Source of the DNA: Parasitella parasitica NRRL 2501
Lineage: Eukaryota; Fungi; Mucoromycota
DNA length: 64,000 nucleotides
Direction: 5' to 3'
NCBI GenBank assembly: GCA_025201805.1
Contig: MU619261.1
Location: 208,445 to 272,444, forward strand
The notes under the pieces are model-generated. The model made no database searches, was not told where the DNA came from, and saw nothing but the letters and a program-made list of their open reading frames with translations. This document shows positions 2,353 through 58,524 of this stretch, piece by piece. Each line of letters opens with the position of its first letter. The first letter of the stretch is position 1. Position numbers and translations under genes: made by a program.

Positions 2353-2564
2353 TATCACAATCTATTCTTGGGCATTTTTAATCTAAAATAGAAATGTAAT
2401 AATGTGGTTGTATTTGATACTTCTTGTCCCTACTTGAAATATTCTTGGGGACATCTTTCTCTTCTCTCAGAAACTTCTCGGCTTTTATCTGAAATAAAAG
2501 ATTTGATATAAAAAACCTTAATATAAATTATCACATACCCAATGACATTTATCATTTACTTGAA

Positions 2565-3090
2565 CTTTTTTTTTTTTTTNNNNNNNNNNCAGAAGCCGTA
2601 AAAAGACTGTATGGTGTCTACTGGCGATTTTGATGAATTTTTATATTCTTGCGCTATCTTCAAAATCAAATCCTATTATATTAACTTGGATAATAATCAA
2701 AGACATCCTGTATTTGATCTTGAGATTTGACAATCTCAACAGCTTTGTAGATAACCGCAAGAACCGTCTGAAGACGTTATTCCATACATTCATTTTATGT
2801 AAACAACCAACTTGTCAGATGTTTGGCATCTTCAAGCTCTTGGCACACTACGCAACTGCTATCCTCCATAGTAATTGCAAGTTTAGAGAAACAATTTGGT
2901 GTGGATCTTCCCGGGCCAAGAAGATCATAAAATCTGCCATTGTGGGATGTTCTCTGTTTATCCAATGCTTTAATTTCACACAAAGAATTTAGTCTGATGT
3001 CGTAATAATCAGACATCTTTGCAGTCAAAGCTACTCCGGTAAATGTATCCAAGTTCAACTACGGATTCTCAAATATGAGTTGGTGCAAAT
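2565..3090 (-). mobile_element. Degenerate 3' remnant of a non-LTR (LINE-type) retroelement, zf-RVT-like C-terminus
   Basis: Minus-strand SCVVCQELEDAKHL, then after a frameshift CLHKMNVWNNVF, matches the CxxC..E(D)xxHL...C....VW pattern of LINE ORF2 C-termini. A poly-A run follows on the minus strand (T-run at 2565-2579, next to an N gap). Confidence 0.6.
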
Positions 3091-3218
3091 GGTAAGGTAA
3101 AACGAATATCCGATTTAAATAGTTCCATCCCATCCCTCCCCCCCCCCCTTGCCTGATTTATAGATTTTTTCTTGTTGCTTTTTTTTTAAACCATATCACT
3201 ACTTGCCCCACCTTGCAA

Positions 3219-55560: not shown

Positions 55561-56599
55561 TTAAAGTTCGTATCCAACAAGAACATAACCTGTTTCTTGG
55601 CCGTAAACGGCAGGATCGATCATTTCAAATCCAAGATACATGAAAGCACGCAGCATGGTGCTTAATGTGTCTTTGTAATCATGGCGATCAACCGCTACAA
55701 CCAAAGCACTACAGCCCGTTTTTTCCTCGGCAAGTTCAATCAAATGAGTGATACTACATTGCATCATGGCTACATGTCAGTCTACATACGCTGTAAGGCC
55801 GAGTTTTTCCTTACCATGATTGAAATTCGCCGTCAGCCCAATTCAATAAACCAGCATTTGGGCCAACAAAAGGAGAGCTGAGAAAAACCGTGTCATTGTA
55901 AATAAATGCTTCACAAGAGAGTGTTCTTATCTCTGGAAATCCTGTTCTGGTCGTCTTGATATTCAAAGTCTCATCAACCTGAGCGTGGAATATGCTAGTT
56001 TGACCAAATATTTGGACAATAAAGTCATTTGTAACTGTCCATGTTTATGGTTGTAATGAGCCACACGAAGTTGTCAGAAGCGTTATACTTACCATTACGA
56101 CCGTTTACAGTGACAAGATCGACTGCAGTTTCTTGTAAGTTTATTTTTGCATCGTTGTTGTTGTTTTGGCTACCTGTAGTGGTAGAAGAAACTGATGTCA
56201 TGGTTTGTAGAGGAATTGGTAATTCCTTTTTTGCAGGACTTGCTATAATCATGGACTCAAGGTGTTGAACTGCTTGCTACTGTTACTACTAATACTAATA
56301 CTCCTACTGCTACTACTGCTGCTGCTACTACTACTGCTACTACTACTGCTACTACTGCTACTACTACTACTACTACTGCTGCTGCTGCTACTGCTGCTAC
56401 TACTACTACTACTATTACTACTACTACTACTAGTACTGCTCGAGGGTATTATATTCTTTTCTTTGGTGGCCTTGGAAAAGATGGTGCTTGAAGCGTAAAG
56501 AAGGATTACCGTGTGTTTATCCAGTGCTGTTACTCTATTTCCTTGTAGGTGTTTCGCTGTTTTGGTTGTTTGTGGCGTTAAATGGTTAGCACAAATCAT
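55561..56599 (-). CDS. OAZ1: Ornithine decarboxylase antizyme: ORF1 56599-56249 and spliced ORF2 from 56258/56252 to 55561
   Basis: C-terminal antizyme domain ITHLIELAEEKTGCSALVVAVDR...LRAFMYLGFEMIDP...VLVGYEL. ORF2 is open across introns 56092-56035 and 55814-55754. An overlapping upstream ORF1 in a different frame ends in TGA. Confidence 0.9.
56272..56440 (-). repeat. (AGT/AGC)n trinucleotide expansion encoding poly-Ser in antizyme ORF1
   Basis: More than 50 triplets. Variation is mostly AGT/AGC, which is synonymous only in the ORF1 frame. Confidence 0.95.
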
Positions 56600-57153
56600 T
56601 GTATAGCATCATGTAGATTACCTGTAAAAACACCTAAAACAAACAGAAATATAAAAAAAGGGGAGGGTCAAGGGTTTAAAAAGGCTGCAATGAGTAATAA
56701 TAATAAATAAAAAAAAGTTTGAAGGATAAGGCTTTTCTTTCTTTATCTGCGTATAGATGGGCTGTCTTGGAAGATTGACGATAGTAAAAGAAAAAGAAAA
56801 GGCTAGTCTTTCGGTTGGTACAGAGGGCTGTCGCGCTTAGGGGCGGTTCAAGTGTTGTAAAGGAAGAAGAAGGGATTTGGGTGAGAAATTTTCATCGCCT
56901 ATTTATACGCACTACACGGAGTGTGCTTAAGCAACTAATAATGCCAGCGTAAATAAGAGCACTCGTTCTTGTATCACATTTGAATTGGGACTATATGCAG
57001 CAATACAATTCATATATCGTGTGTCAAGTTTAGAGAGCTGCATGCATCGCTTCTAGGCACTCCCTTTTTTTTTTTCTTGAAATGAACCCACAAGTACATA
57101 TATATATATATACTCGGTTTCTGAAAGCCAGGCATGCCGTTTATTGCCGTTCA

Positions 57154-58524
57154 TCACAATAAGATGCTTCTTTTAAACACTCGAGTCGAGCCATACTGCA
57201 GCTGCAGGTTATTAACAATATCAAGGAGCACTCTTTCGTTGGAGACTGCTGTTAGCGCAGTAATTGGTGTGTTTGGGTATATACTTGTTATCTTTTCGGC
57301 TGCTCTGAGGTATCCAAAGTGAAAATCTGTACCCCATTGCGAAACACAGTGTGCATCCTCCAGCACAAATCTTGTGATACGTCCATTCTGATGTAGCTGT
57401 TTGATGTCTAATGTACATTTTGAAAAGTCGTCAAATGTCATCAAGTACACTGTCGGCTTCTGCAGTGCTTGGACAATGGTTTGCTTGAATTCCACAGTGG
57501 GGATCCACCAGTTTCTCTTGAGGTTTCGGAACCTTGTTACAAAATAACTCTGCACCTGTTCTAGATTGAATGACGGATTTGTCTCTTTCGCGAGCAGGGA
57601 TGAAAGCGATGGCACTATAACGATGGTAACAAGAAATGGATTATGCTGCAAGGTAGCTGGCAGCAAGTAGCACATATCTCTTGCTGGTCCAGACGGCATA
57701 ACAATCAAAAGGTTTTCATTGTCAAGATGGGCATATATCGAATCTAGTTGATTGGCCATGAATGCTTTTTGATGGAACAGTGCTAGCCGCTCTTCGATTC
57801 TTTGCTGTTGGGGTACAATGAACGTTTTGTCGCTGTCATCAGGGTTAGGGTCGGCCGATGTAGGAAAGCTCGTTTCGCTTTCCCATTCATTCGAAGCATC
57901 AAAGTAGAAGGCATCTTCGCTCATGGCACGCGTTACAGATGACCTACTAGGACTGTTTAAAGCTCCATTAGGTATTTTCTCTCGATTGCTTAATTTCATA
58001 TGCCTAATACGAAGCTGTTGGTTTGCTCATATTAGTCTGTATAGCAAGATCCTTTGATGGACTAATTTTACCTTGGCTACAGGGTCCATAAAACCAGATT
58101 TTTGATGGTCAGCGTCCACACCAGCCGGTTGTTTTTCTTCTGAAGGGATGGTTTCAGGCTCCTTGTCTACCACAGACCTTGTATCAAATTCTAACAAGGT
58201 GGAAAGTTTGCCCTTACCGTCTGCTTCCATATTTGTCGCCCAAACACAAGGATTGTGTGCCTCCTGCTCTTTTAATGCTCTGTTGCGTACTGTTCTATTG
58301 GAATCATCTTTTTCATAATCTAGAGTATAGTATAAGATCATAGCCACCATCTTGTACACATGTAATTAATTACTTTCAGAACTCCTCGCCAATTTGGGTT
58401 GTTCGTACGGTTTCGTGGCAGAGGCGTGCCACACCCTTGTTTTGATTGCAATAGGAGTAACAGCGTATGGCTTGACTGTGTTCTCATACCAGGTCAATTG
58501 CTCCTTGTAATTAGTGTTCATCAT
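57154..58524 (-). CDS. Truncated RecQ-family protein (first RecA lobe only, degenerate ATPase motifs), 3 exons
   Basis: FMANQLDSI (motif 0), MPSGPARDMCYLLPA (cf. MPTGGGKSLCYQLPA), VPSLSSL, VLEDAHCVSQWGTDF (cf. DEAHCVSQWGHDF), ITALTA, then stop. The three track ORFs join in frame via GT-AG introns near 58372-58320 and 58071-58015. Confidence 0.82.

Follow-up and report, generated by a model that had tools for sequence, protein, structure and literature searches.

The single antizyme gene of a Mucorales fungus probably starts at its own AUG, behind a conserved upstream reading frame that has none

Ornithine decarboxylase (ODC) antizyme is the textbook example of a regulatory +1 frameshift in a cellular gene, and Ivanov & Atkins 2007 (PMC1874602) describe that shift as required by all animal and fungal antizyme genes, with Tetrahymena thermophila and Capsaspora owczarzaki as the sole exceptions listed there. 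Zygomycete antizymes (Rhizopus oryzae) are mentioned in the same paper, the table of which gives no shift site for that phylum. The gene considered here occupies positions 55561–56907 on the minus strand of a 64,000-nucleotide (nt) stretch of Parasitella parasitica NRRL 2501 (contig MU619261.1, positions 208,445 to 272,444), referred to below in its entirety as the window; with a single ODC_AZ match genome-wide, it is the sole ODC antizyme gene of this 32.8-Mb Mucor-like assembly. Its first open reading frame (ORF1) contains no AUG and ends on the AUG of the second (ORF2), and antizyme is probably made by initiation at that AUG, gated by ORF1 as a conserved non-AUG upstream ORF and with no classical +1 shift. 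All features described below lie on the minus strand and are numbered by their position in the window.

The antizyme locus and its orthologs

ORF2 comprises about 190 codons spread over three exons. Exon A (56093–56252) begins MIIASPAKKELPIPLQ... and carries the first AUG of the spliced mRNA, exon B (55815–56034) is homologous to annotated Rhizopus, Mycotypha, and Spinellus proteins, and exon C (55561–55753) contains the ODC_AZ domain and the TAA stop. The exons were searched individually against Pfam and against proteins; exon C matches ODC_AZ (PF02100) with 43.2 bits (E = 4e-11; cut-off 24.2), and PF02100 is likewise present in the homologues from Rhizopus, Phycomyces, Lichtheimia, and others. 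The downstream frame, in which the ATG lies, is a true member of the ODC antizyme family. Both ORF2 introns, GTAAGT...ACAG at 56035–56092 and GTAAGG...TGTAG at 55754–55814, have canonical ends, and their junctions are consistent with the orthologs and with an annotated Rhizopus arrhizus protein (P0011), which the second intron matches at the junction ...EFxx-C-ITHLIEL.

Upstream of ORF2, the gene model places the 3′ end of leader exon 1 at 56622–56679, a 65-nt leader intron (GTAATC...gctaac...CAG) at 56557–56621, and the beginning of leader exon 2 at 56556. ORF1 follows at 56249–56524; it consists of 91 sense codons and a UGA, lacks an AUG, and encodes LDKHTVILLYASSTIFSKATKEKN. Its conserved peptide block, LDKHTVILLYASSTIFSKATKEKNI, is encoded at 56450–56524, and an AGT/AGC (Ser) trinucleotide array occupies 56284–56437.

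Protein searches with exon C gave nine, and later 27, related proteins. The eleven orthologous loci compared comprise five Mucor-like assemblies (L001, L002, L003, L005, and L006–8), Mucor hiemalis (L004), L009–11, Phycomyces blakesleeanus (L013), Lichtheimia ramosa (L014), Rhizopus delemar (L015), and L016/L017, a single distant taxon present in two samples. Metagenome scans with a protein profile and with a leader DNA pattern yielded no further relatives. In M. hiemalis (GCA_977110905.1, ~2520–3100), single-base homopolymer deletions break ORF1 as well as exons B and C of ORF2; these look like long-read consensus errors and the frames of L004 are not trustworthy. This locus, the only one with the Ser/Asn tract in the third frame, was set aside for its homopolymer deletions in exons B and C. 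In all 12 loci, which come from several Mucorales families, ORF2 remains intact and evolves under purifying selection.

ORF1 is a coding sequence with a probable CUG start

Judged by its pattern of substitution, ORF1 is conserved as coding sequence. The first 25 codons are free of indels in every lineage, and the variable columns of this block are distributed 7/5/17 over the three codon positions, that is, mostly on third positions. Synonymous codon differences outnumber non-synonymous ones in the ORF1 frame (31:23), while the remaining frames give ratios of 9:45 and 3:52. Third-position identity in the block is 0.50 for Phycomyces and 0.39 for L016, with amino-acid identities of 0.83 and 0.67, respectively. 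The remainder of ORF1 is a variable, Ser/Asn-rich tail in which the frame is kept through many indels. ORF1-like peptides were also sought in other fungi, and the matches were limited to Mucorales.

The Ser array within this tail has 51 units in the window as opposed to 5–12 Ser/Asn codons in relatives, a microsatellite expansion specific to this genome. At the other end of ORF1, the first 18 codons (56524–56471) show a silent-site identity of 0.78–0.89 among Mucor–Rhizopus loci, compared with 0.44–0.72 for the best antizyme-domain block; RNA structure was sought in this 5′ block with RNAalifold, and none was supported that would explain the silent-site conservation.

The probable start codon of ORF1 is the CUG at 56522–56524, which is invariant among the loci and stands in the context GCA CUG G, with a purine at −3 and G at +4. 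Upstream of it the ORF1 frame is broken: L003 has a TAA, L006 is shifted by 1 nt, L009 carries a 2-nt indel, and R. delemar has an in-frame TGA, which lies five codons before the CUG with no other near-cognate codon between the two. Because the upstream frame is not preserved and R. delemar carries this TGA, the CUG is the only start candidate common to the loci. Two further candidates were tried and rejected. The original prediction had ORF1 begin at ATG 56599, the only ATG that might open this frame, but it is intronic (it sits in the leader intron, 56621–56557), and a start in leader exon 1, at an in-frame AUA or CUG of the window, was dismissed because the frame across the leader junction is not preserved among species. 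In P. blakesleeanus (L013, KV440975.1), 84 codons of open ORF1 frame precede the CUG, in an AUG-less and CT-rich leader.

Frame relation and the AUGA overlap

The original prediction read the junction of the two frames correctly from the letters. The minus strand reads ...AGT AGC AAG CAG TTC AAC ACC TTG AGT CCA TGA; the ORF1 frame ends CCA-UGA (56254–56249), and its TGA (56251–56249) overlaps the ATG at 56252–56250, so that the ORF2 start codon and the ORF1 stop codon together form an AUGA at 56249–56252. The ATG frame is −1/+2 relative to ORF1, not +1, and a +1 shift at CCA-TGA would reach a stop after 26 codons. A CCT-TGA at 56257–56262, put forward in that prediction as a candidate +1 site, does belong to the third frame, from which a one-base skip at this site does lead into the ATG frame; the site is unconserved, and no translated frame enters it. 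The classical +1 layout is thus absent: ORF2 is −1 to ORF1, ORF1 is AUG-less, and CCU-UGA is not conserved.

Alignment of the Mucorales antizyme orthologs shows the AUGA register to be conserved across relatives, including the A at 56274/56275 that had been suspected of being surplus. An AUGA that sets the two frames in this relation is also present in L001, L002, L003, L005, L006, L009, L011, and Phycomyces, across six different ORF1 lengths from CUG to stop (276, 132, 135, 144, 123, and 111 nt), all of which are multiples of three. On this comparison of sequences, the AUGA arrangement exceeds chance.

The codons at the end of ORF1 differ between lineages. In the Mucor-like loci and in L009 and L011, ORF1 ends CCA UGA, and in Phycomyces GAA UGA, in each case within an AUGA; in R. 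delemar the end is CCA UGU UAA (AUGUUAA), with the stop 4 nt past the A of the AUG. The short homologous upstream ORF of Lichtheimia lies in another frame and ends 95 nt before the AUG, and L016/L017 have a TAG 38 nt before it in both samples. Overlap or abutment of stop and start is present, therefore, in the window, L001–3, L005, L006, L009, L011, L013, and R. delemar, and absent in Lichtheimia and L016/17. The last ORF1 codon (CCA, GAA, or UGU) and the stop (UGA or UAA) are both variable, and because these and the position at which ORF1 ends vary between lineages, no shift site is conserved.

The ORF2 AUG, by comparison, is invariant in 12/12 loci, and ORF2 begins M-I/L-I or M-M. In the ORF2 frame, a coding pattern of substitution sets in at this AUG: substitutions in exon A are synonymous in that frame from AUG 56252 onward, and upstream of it the frame is closed within 3–16 codons in most loci. 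As far as the alignments go, what is conserved is the ORF2 AUG together with an upstream ORF that runs no more than 4 nt past it, and not a shift codon.

A spliced leader without AUG

In all orthologs the leader intron runs from GT to AG over 50–85 nt, with an unconserved interior between flanks that hardly differ among loci. The Phycomyces Joint Genome Institute (JGI) model PHYBLDRAFT_77310 (P0028) has its splice at precisely the homologous junction. Labelled 'partial', which means that it has no start codon, it is in the same frame as ORF1 and reads through to the ORF1 stop. In the window, the leader intron holds ATG 56599 plus two other ATGs. Across eight loci, no ATG precedes the ORF2 ATG in the leader exons (~2.9 kb in total), whereas the introns (0.49 kb) hold seven. 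The weight of this depletion rests on the contrast with the introns and on its recurrence across species. Further upstream, a TATAAA box (56902–56907), found at a comparable position in L001–L003, marks the antizyme promoter; an ATG at ~56895, 12 nt downstream of the TATAAA and unconserved among relatives, probably precedes the start of transcription.

The two leader exons are bridged by a short helix with arms of 8–9 nt. Its 5′ arm, TAGGTGTTT (56628–56636), closely precedes the 5′ splice site of the leader intron, and its 3′ arm, AAACACCTA (56546–56554), closely follows the 3′ splice site, at the start of leader exon 2. Scored as a duplex of two separate arms, the helix comes out at −8 to −17 kcal/mol across 12 loci, and homologous arms are present in L001–L017. 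The pairing UAGGUGUUU/AAACACCUA is replaced in relatives by AGGCGUUU/AAACGCCU, GGGCGUUU/AAACGCCC, and GGUGUU/GACGCC, with compensatory changes from U-A to C-G and, in the outer pair, from A-U to G-C. On this model, pairing of the arms would leave the intron as a loop in the pre-mRNA and would create, in the mRNA, a hairpin 17–22 nt upstream of the CUG.

The 5′ arm is part of the pyrimidine-rich, nearly invariant block TTAAACCCTTGACCCTCCCC...CTGTTTGTTT that makes up the 3′ end of leader exon 1. The portion at 56679–56637, TTAAACCCTTGACCCTCCCC(T)nATATTTCTGTTTGTTT, is almost invariant in Mucor-like species and lies in no preserved reading frame.

Proposed mechanism

Removal of the leader intron would leave an mRNA with a long AUG-free leader. 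Part of the scanning ribosomes would then start at CUG 56524 and translate ORF1, first the 25-residue N-terminal peptide and then the Ser/Asn-rich tail, terminating at the UGA within AUGA 56252–56249. ORF2 would be initiated at AUG 56252, the first AUG of the mRNA, either by ribosomes that leak past the CUG or by reinitiation after ORF1. ORF1 would in this way act as a regulatory upstream ORF in place of the classical ORF1, and it is probably the sensor of polyamines. We consider this account—initiation at the antizyme's own AUG, gated by a conserved non-AUG upstream ORF—to be probable. Leaky scanning is favoured by the widely different ORF1 lengths that are tolerated (26–91 codons). Reinitiation is favoured because the end of ORF1 in each case falls at or before the AUG and its frame is kept despite indels in an unconserved tail. 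Since there is a single antizyme gene in the genome, a canonical copy elsewhere is excluded.

One of the options offered in the original prediction, in which the register is real and the gene has moved to stop-restart or initiation at ATG 56252, is upheld in this general form, but the double recoding included in the same option is disfavoured. An upstream-ORF mechanism is preferred over a frameshift or double recoding on the ground that ORF1 stops well short of the AUG in some relatives.

Several points weigh against initiation at the ORF2 AUG under the control of ORF1. The decoding is predicted from the sequence. If polyamines raised initiation at the CUG, as is reported for the upstream ORF of ODC homologues, simple leaky scanning would yield less antizyme, a change in the wrong direction; induction would then require coupling through ORF1. 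Should ORF1 be no more than inhibitory, its translation would have to fall in response to polyamines. Ninety-one codons are long for ordinary reinitiation, and no conserved RNA structure that might assist it is supported by RNAalifold around the AUGA overlap or 3′ of it. The lack of ATG in the leader of any single species is not significant against dinucleotide shuffles. Finally, ORF1, with its conserved N-terminal peptide and a flexible linker after it, would also make sense as the N-terminal domain of a fusion protein.

A more specific version may be entertained, although we hold it only tentatively and would sooner bet against it: that an entire fungal order has swapped the +1 frameshift for another switch, in which ORF1, derived from its classical counterpart, starts at a CUG, retains the sensing peptide, and ends on the antizyme AUG, and polyamines act through termination-coupled reinitiation or through the choice between the CUG and AUG starts.

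Alternative explanations

ORF1 could be fused to ORF2 by a programmed −1 (or +2) frameshift at its last codons (AGU CCA UGA), which would be a new direction of shift for antizyme while polyamines were still sensed at a slow UGA. The exact coincidence of the end of ORF1 with the beginning of ORF2 in most lineages speaks for it, as do the similarity of the UGA-U context to the classical UCC-UGA-U and the resemblance of a conserved N-terminal peptide and linker-like tail to parts of a fusion protein; moreover, a −2 shift in S. cerevisiae is reported for the mammalian cassette (PMC1874602), and thus non-+1 events do occur at antizyme sites. The site, however, has no slippery pattern, and −1 tRNA re-pairing would be poor (CCA to UCC, GAA to AGA). 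Its P-site codon and stop vary by lineage, with CCA UGU UAA in R. delemar, and fusion is impossible in Lichtheimia and L016/17, where ORF1 ends 38–95 nt upstream. The invariant AUG would be unneeded, and no conserved 3′ structure was found with RNAalifold. We therefore regard a frameshift as unlikely.

Alternatively, ORF1 may not be translated at all, the leader being purely an RNA element and ORF2 an ordinary first-AUG gene, with antizyme regulated by transcription or degradation. The leader without AUG, the high third-position identity of the ORF1 block relative to the antizyme domain (0.78–0.89 vs 0.44–0.72), and the conserved exon-bridging helix, which implies constraint at the RNA level, are all in keeping with this. 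ORF1 nevertheless has its substitutions concentrated at third positions, with a synonymous pattern in a single frame, Phycomyces and L016 keep the peptide while their silent sites diverge, and the frame survives many indels in a sequence whose conserved block has no detected RNA structure. Improbable to a similar degree, this explanation stands no better than a frameshift.

Far less credible, and refuted by the orthologs, is a further option of the original prediction, an intron from 56509 to 56277 (or similar) that would splice ORF1 to ORF2 and dispense with recoding. The GTAATC at 56509 and the AG at 56277 are indeed present, but such an intron would remove the most conserved coding block of ORF1, its acceptor region is unconserved, and its donor is not kept, being replaced by GTCATT, GTCATC, or GTCCTC in Phycomyces, Rhizopus, and L009; model P0028 from Phycomyces also reads straight on to the ORF1 stop. 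A decaying gene, with a former +1 site lost and ORF2 poorly expressed or silent, is equally hard to believe: the locus does depart from the rule given for all fungal antizymes in PMC1874602, but ORF2 is intact under purifying selection in every one of the 12 loci and belongs to the only antizyme gene of the genome.

The weakest explanation, also raised in the original prediction, is an assembly error: dropping one A at 56274/56275 would join the Ser tract to CCU-UGA-G, where a classical +1 shift enters ORF2, but at least five related species, assembled independently, show the same register (L001, L002, L003, and L005 share AAR CAG TTY ... TTR AGT CCA TGA), the changes AAG/AAA, TTC/TTT, and TTG/TTA are synonymous in the CCA-TGA frame and non-synonymous in the other two, the third-frame stop is missing in L006–8, L009–11, and Phycomyces, which makes the CCU-UGA site a chance occurrence, and the only locus with a third-frame Ser tract, that of M. 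hiemalis, has other homopolymer deletions in ORF2; this explanation is refuted.

Annotation, neighbourhood, and significance

The layout accounts for the way in which Mucorales annotations truncate or split the gene, with partial models in Rhizopus, Mycotypha, and Spinellus. The Phycomyces annotation (KV440975.1, 1971–2465 and 3001–3848) divides the gene between two hypothetical proteins, with ORF1 in PHYBLDRAFT_77310 (partial) and part of ORF2 in PHYBLDRAFT_157949. In the window, a RecQ-like helicase ORF of 281 codons (57154–57999, minus strand) lies directly upstream of the antizyme promoter.

If initiation at the ORF2 AUG under the control of ORF1 is true, the gene would represent a natural experiment in which one polyamine-sensing circuit has been rebuilt by a different translational mechanism. 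It would also be a small and tractable system, as it comes down to three codons: CUG 56524, UGA 56251, and AUG 56252. On antizyme decoding in Mucorales or Zygomycota, the later papers found only restate that the gene exists, in a search that left subscription journals outside; likewise, no published account of an AUG-less ORF1 with an AUGA antizyme layout was found in the literature searched, which did not cover subscription journals, so prior knowledge is possible.

Comparison with known systems

The Mucorales gene shares with classical antizymes the ODC_AZ family, a short ORF1 that abuts a long ORF2, an ORF1 that ends UGA-U in most loci, and a single-copy place in the polyamine pathway. Unlike in the classical gene, ORF2 is here −1 and has its own invariant AUG, ORF1 is AUG-less and has no conserved shift codon at its end, and in two lineages ORF1 is detached from ORF2.

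Within fungi, the antizyme ORF1 of Agaricomycetes encodes a nascent-peptide stimulator, YYYSTTFSGGP(G/E)WRF (PMC1874602 and PMC4505036). This too is a conserved peptide encoded by ORF1 of a fungal antizyme, and Y-x-S-S/T-T-x-F-S loosely resembles the Mucorales LLYASSTIFSK; however, the Agaricomycete peptide lies 3–15 residues before the shift site, whereas that of Mucorales is at the N terminus of ORF1, 8–73 residues before the stop. The resemblance is short and should be taken as a lead only.

Viral termination-reinitiation involves an upstream pseudoknot or a motif complementary to ribosomal RNA near the overlap. Its occurrence at AUGA and UAAUG overlaps (victoriviruses, caliciviruses, and influenza B) is reviewed in PMC3542737. 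Common to these systems and the antizyme locus are the AUGA stop/start overlap and a long upstream ORF; the locus differs in being a cellular gene and in that not all relatives have the overlap. No RNA structure near the overlap was supported by RNAalifold.

The Tetrahymena and Capsaspora antizymes are alike in that a simple +1 shift does not explain expression of their ORF2. According to PMC1874602, however, Tetrahymena has no equivalent of ORF1 and Capsaspora a 6-codon upstream ORF, and both are protists, whereas the fungal gene described here has a long ORF1 with a conserved peptide.

ODC and antizyme-inhibitor mRNAs carry a conserved upstream ORF with a non-AUG start, the uCC, which is also reported for the ODC of Zygomycota and at which polyamines raise initiation in ODC homologues (PMC2811004). 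The uCC and the Mucorales ORF1 are both conserved coding upstream ORFs with a near-cognate start in a strong context, in an mRNA of the polyamine pathway, and with proline near the C terminus. The peptides themselves differ: the C-termini of ORF1 are ..LSP, ..KSP, ..SSP, ..QPE, ..EPC, and ..GSK, in which a single Pro is frequent, and PP, PPW, and PS endings are absent. Furthermore, the gene downstream of ORF1 should be induced by polyamines and not repressed, and it is here that the upstream stop overlaps the main AUG.

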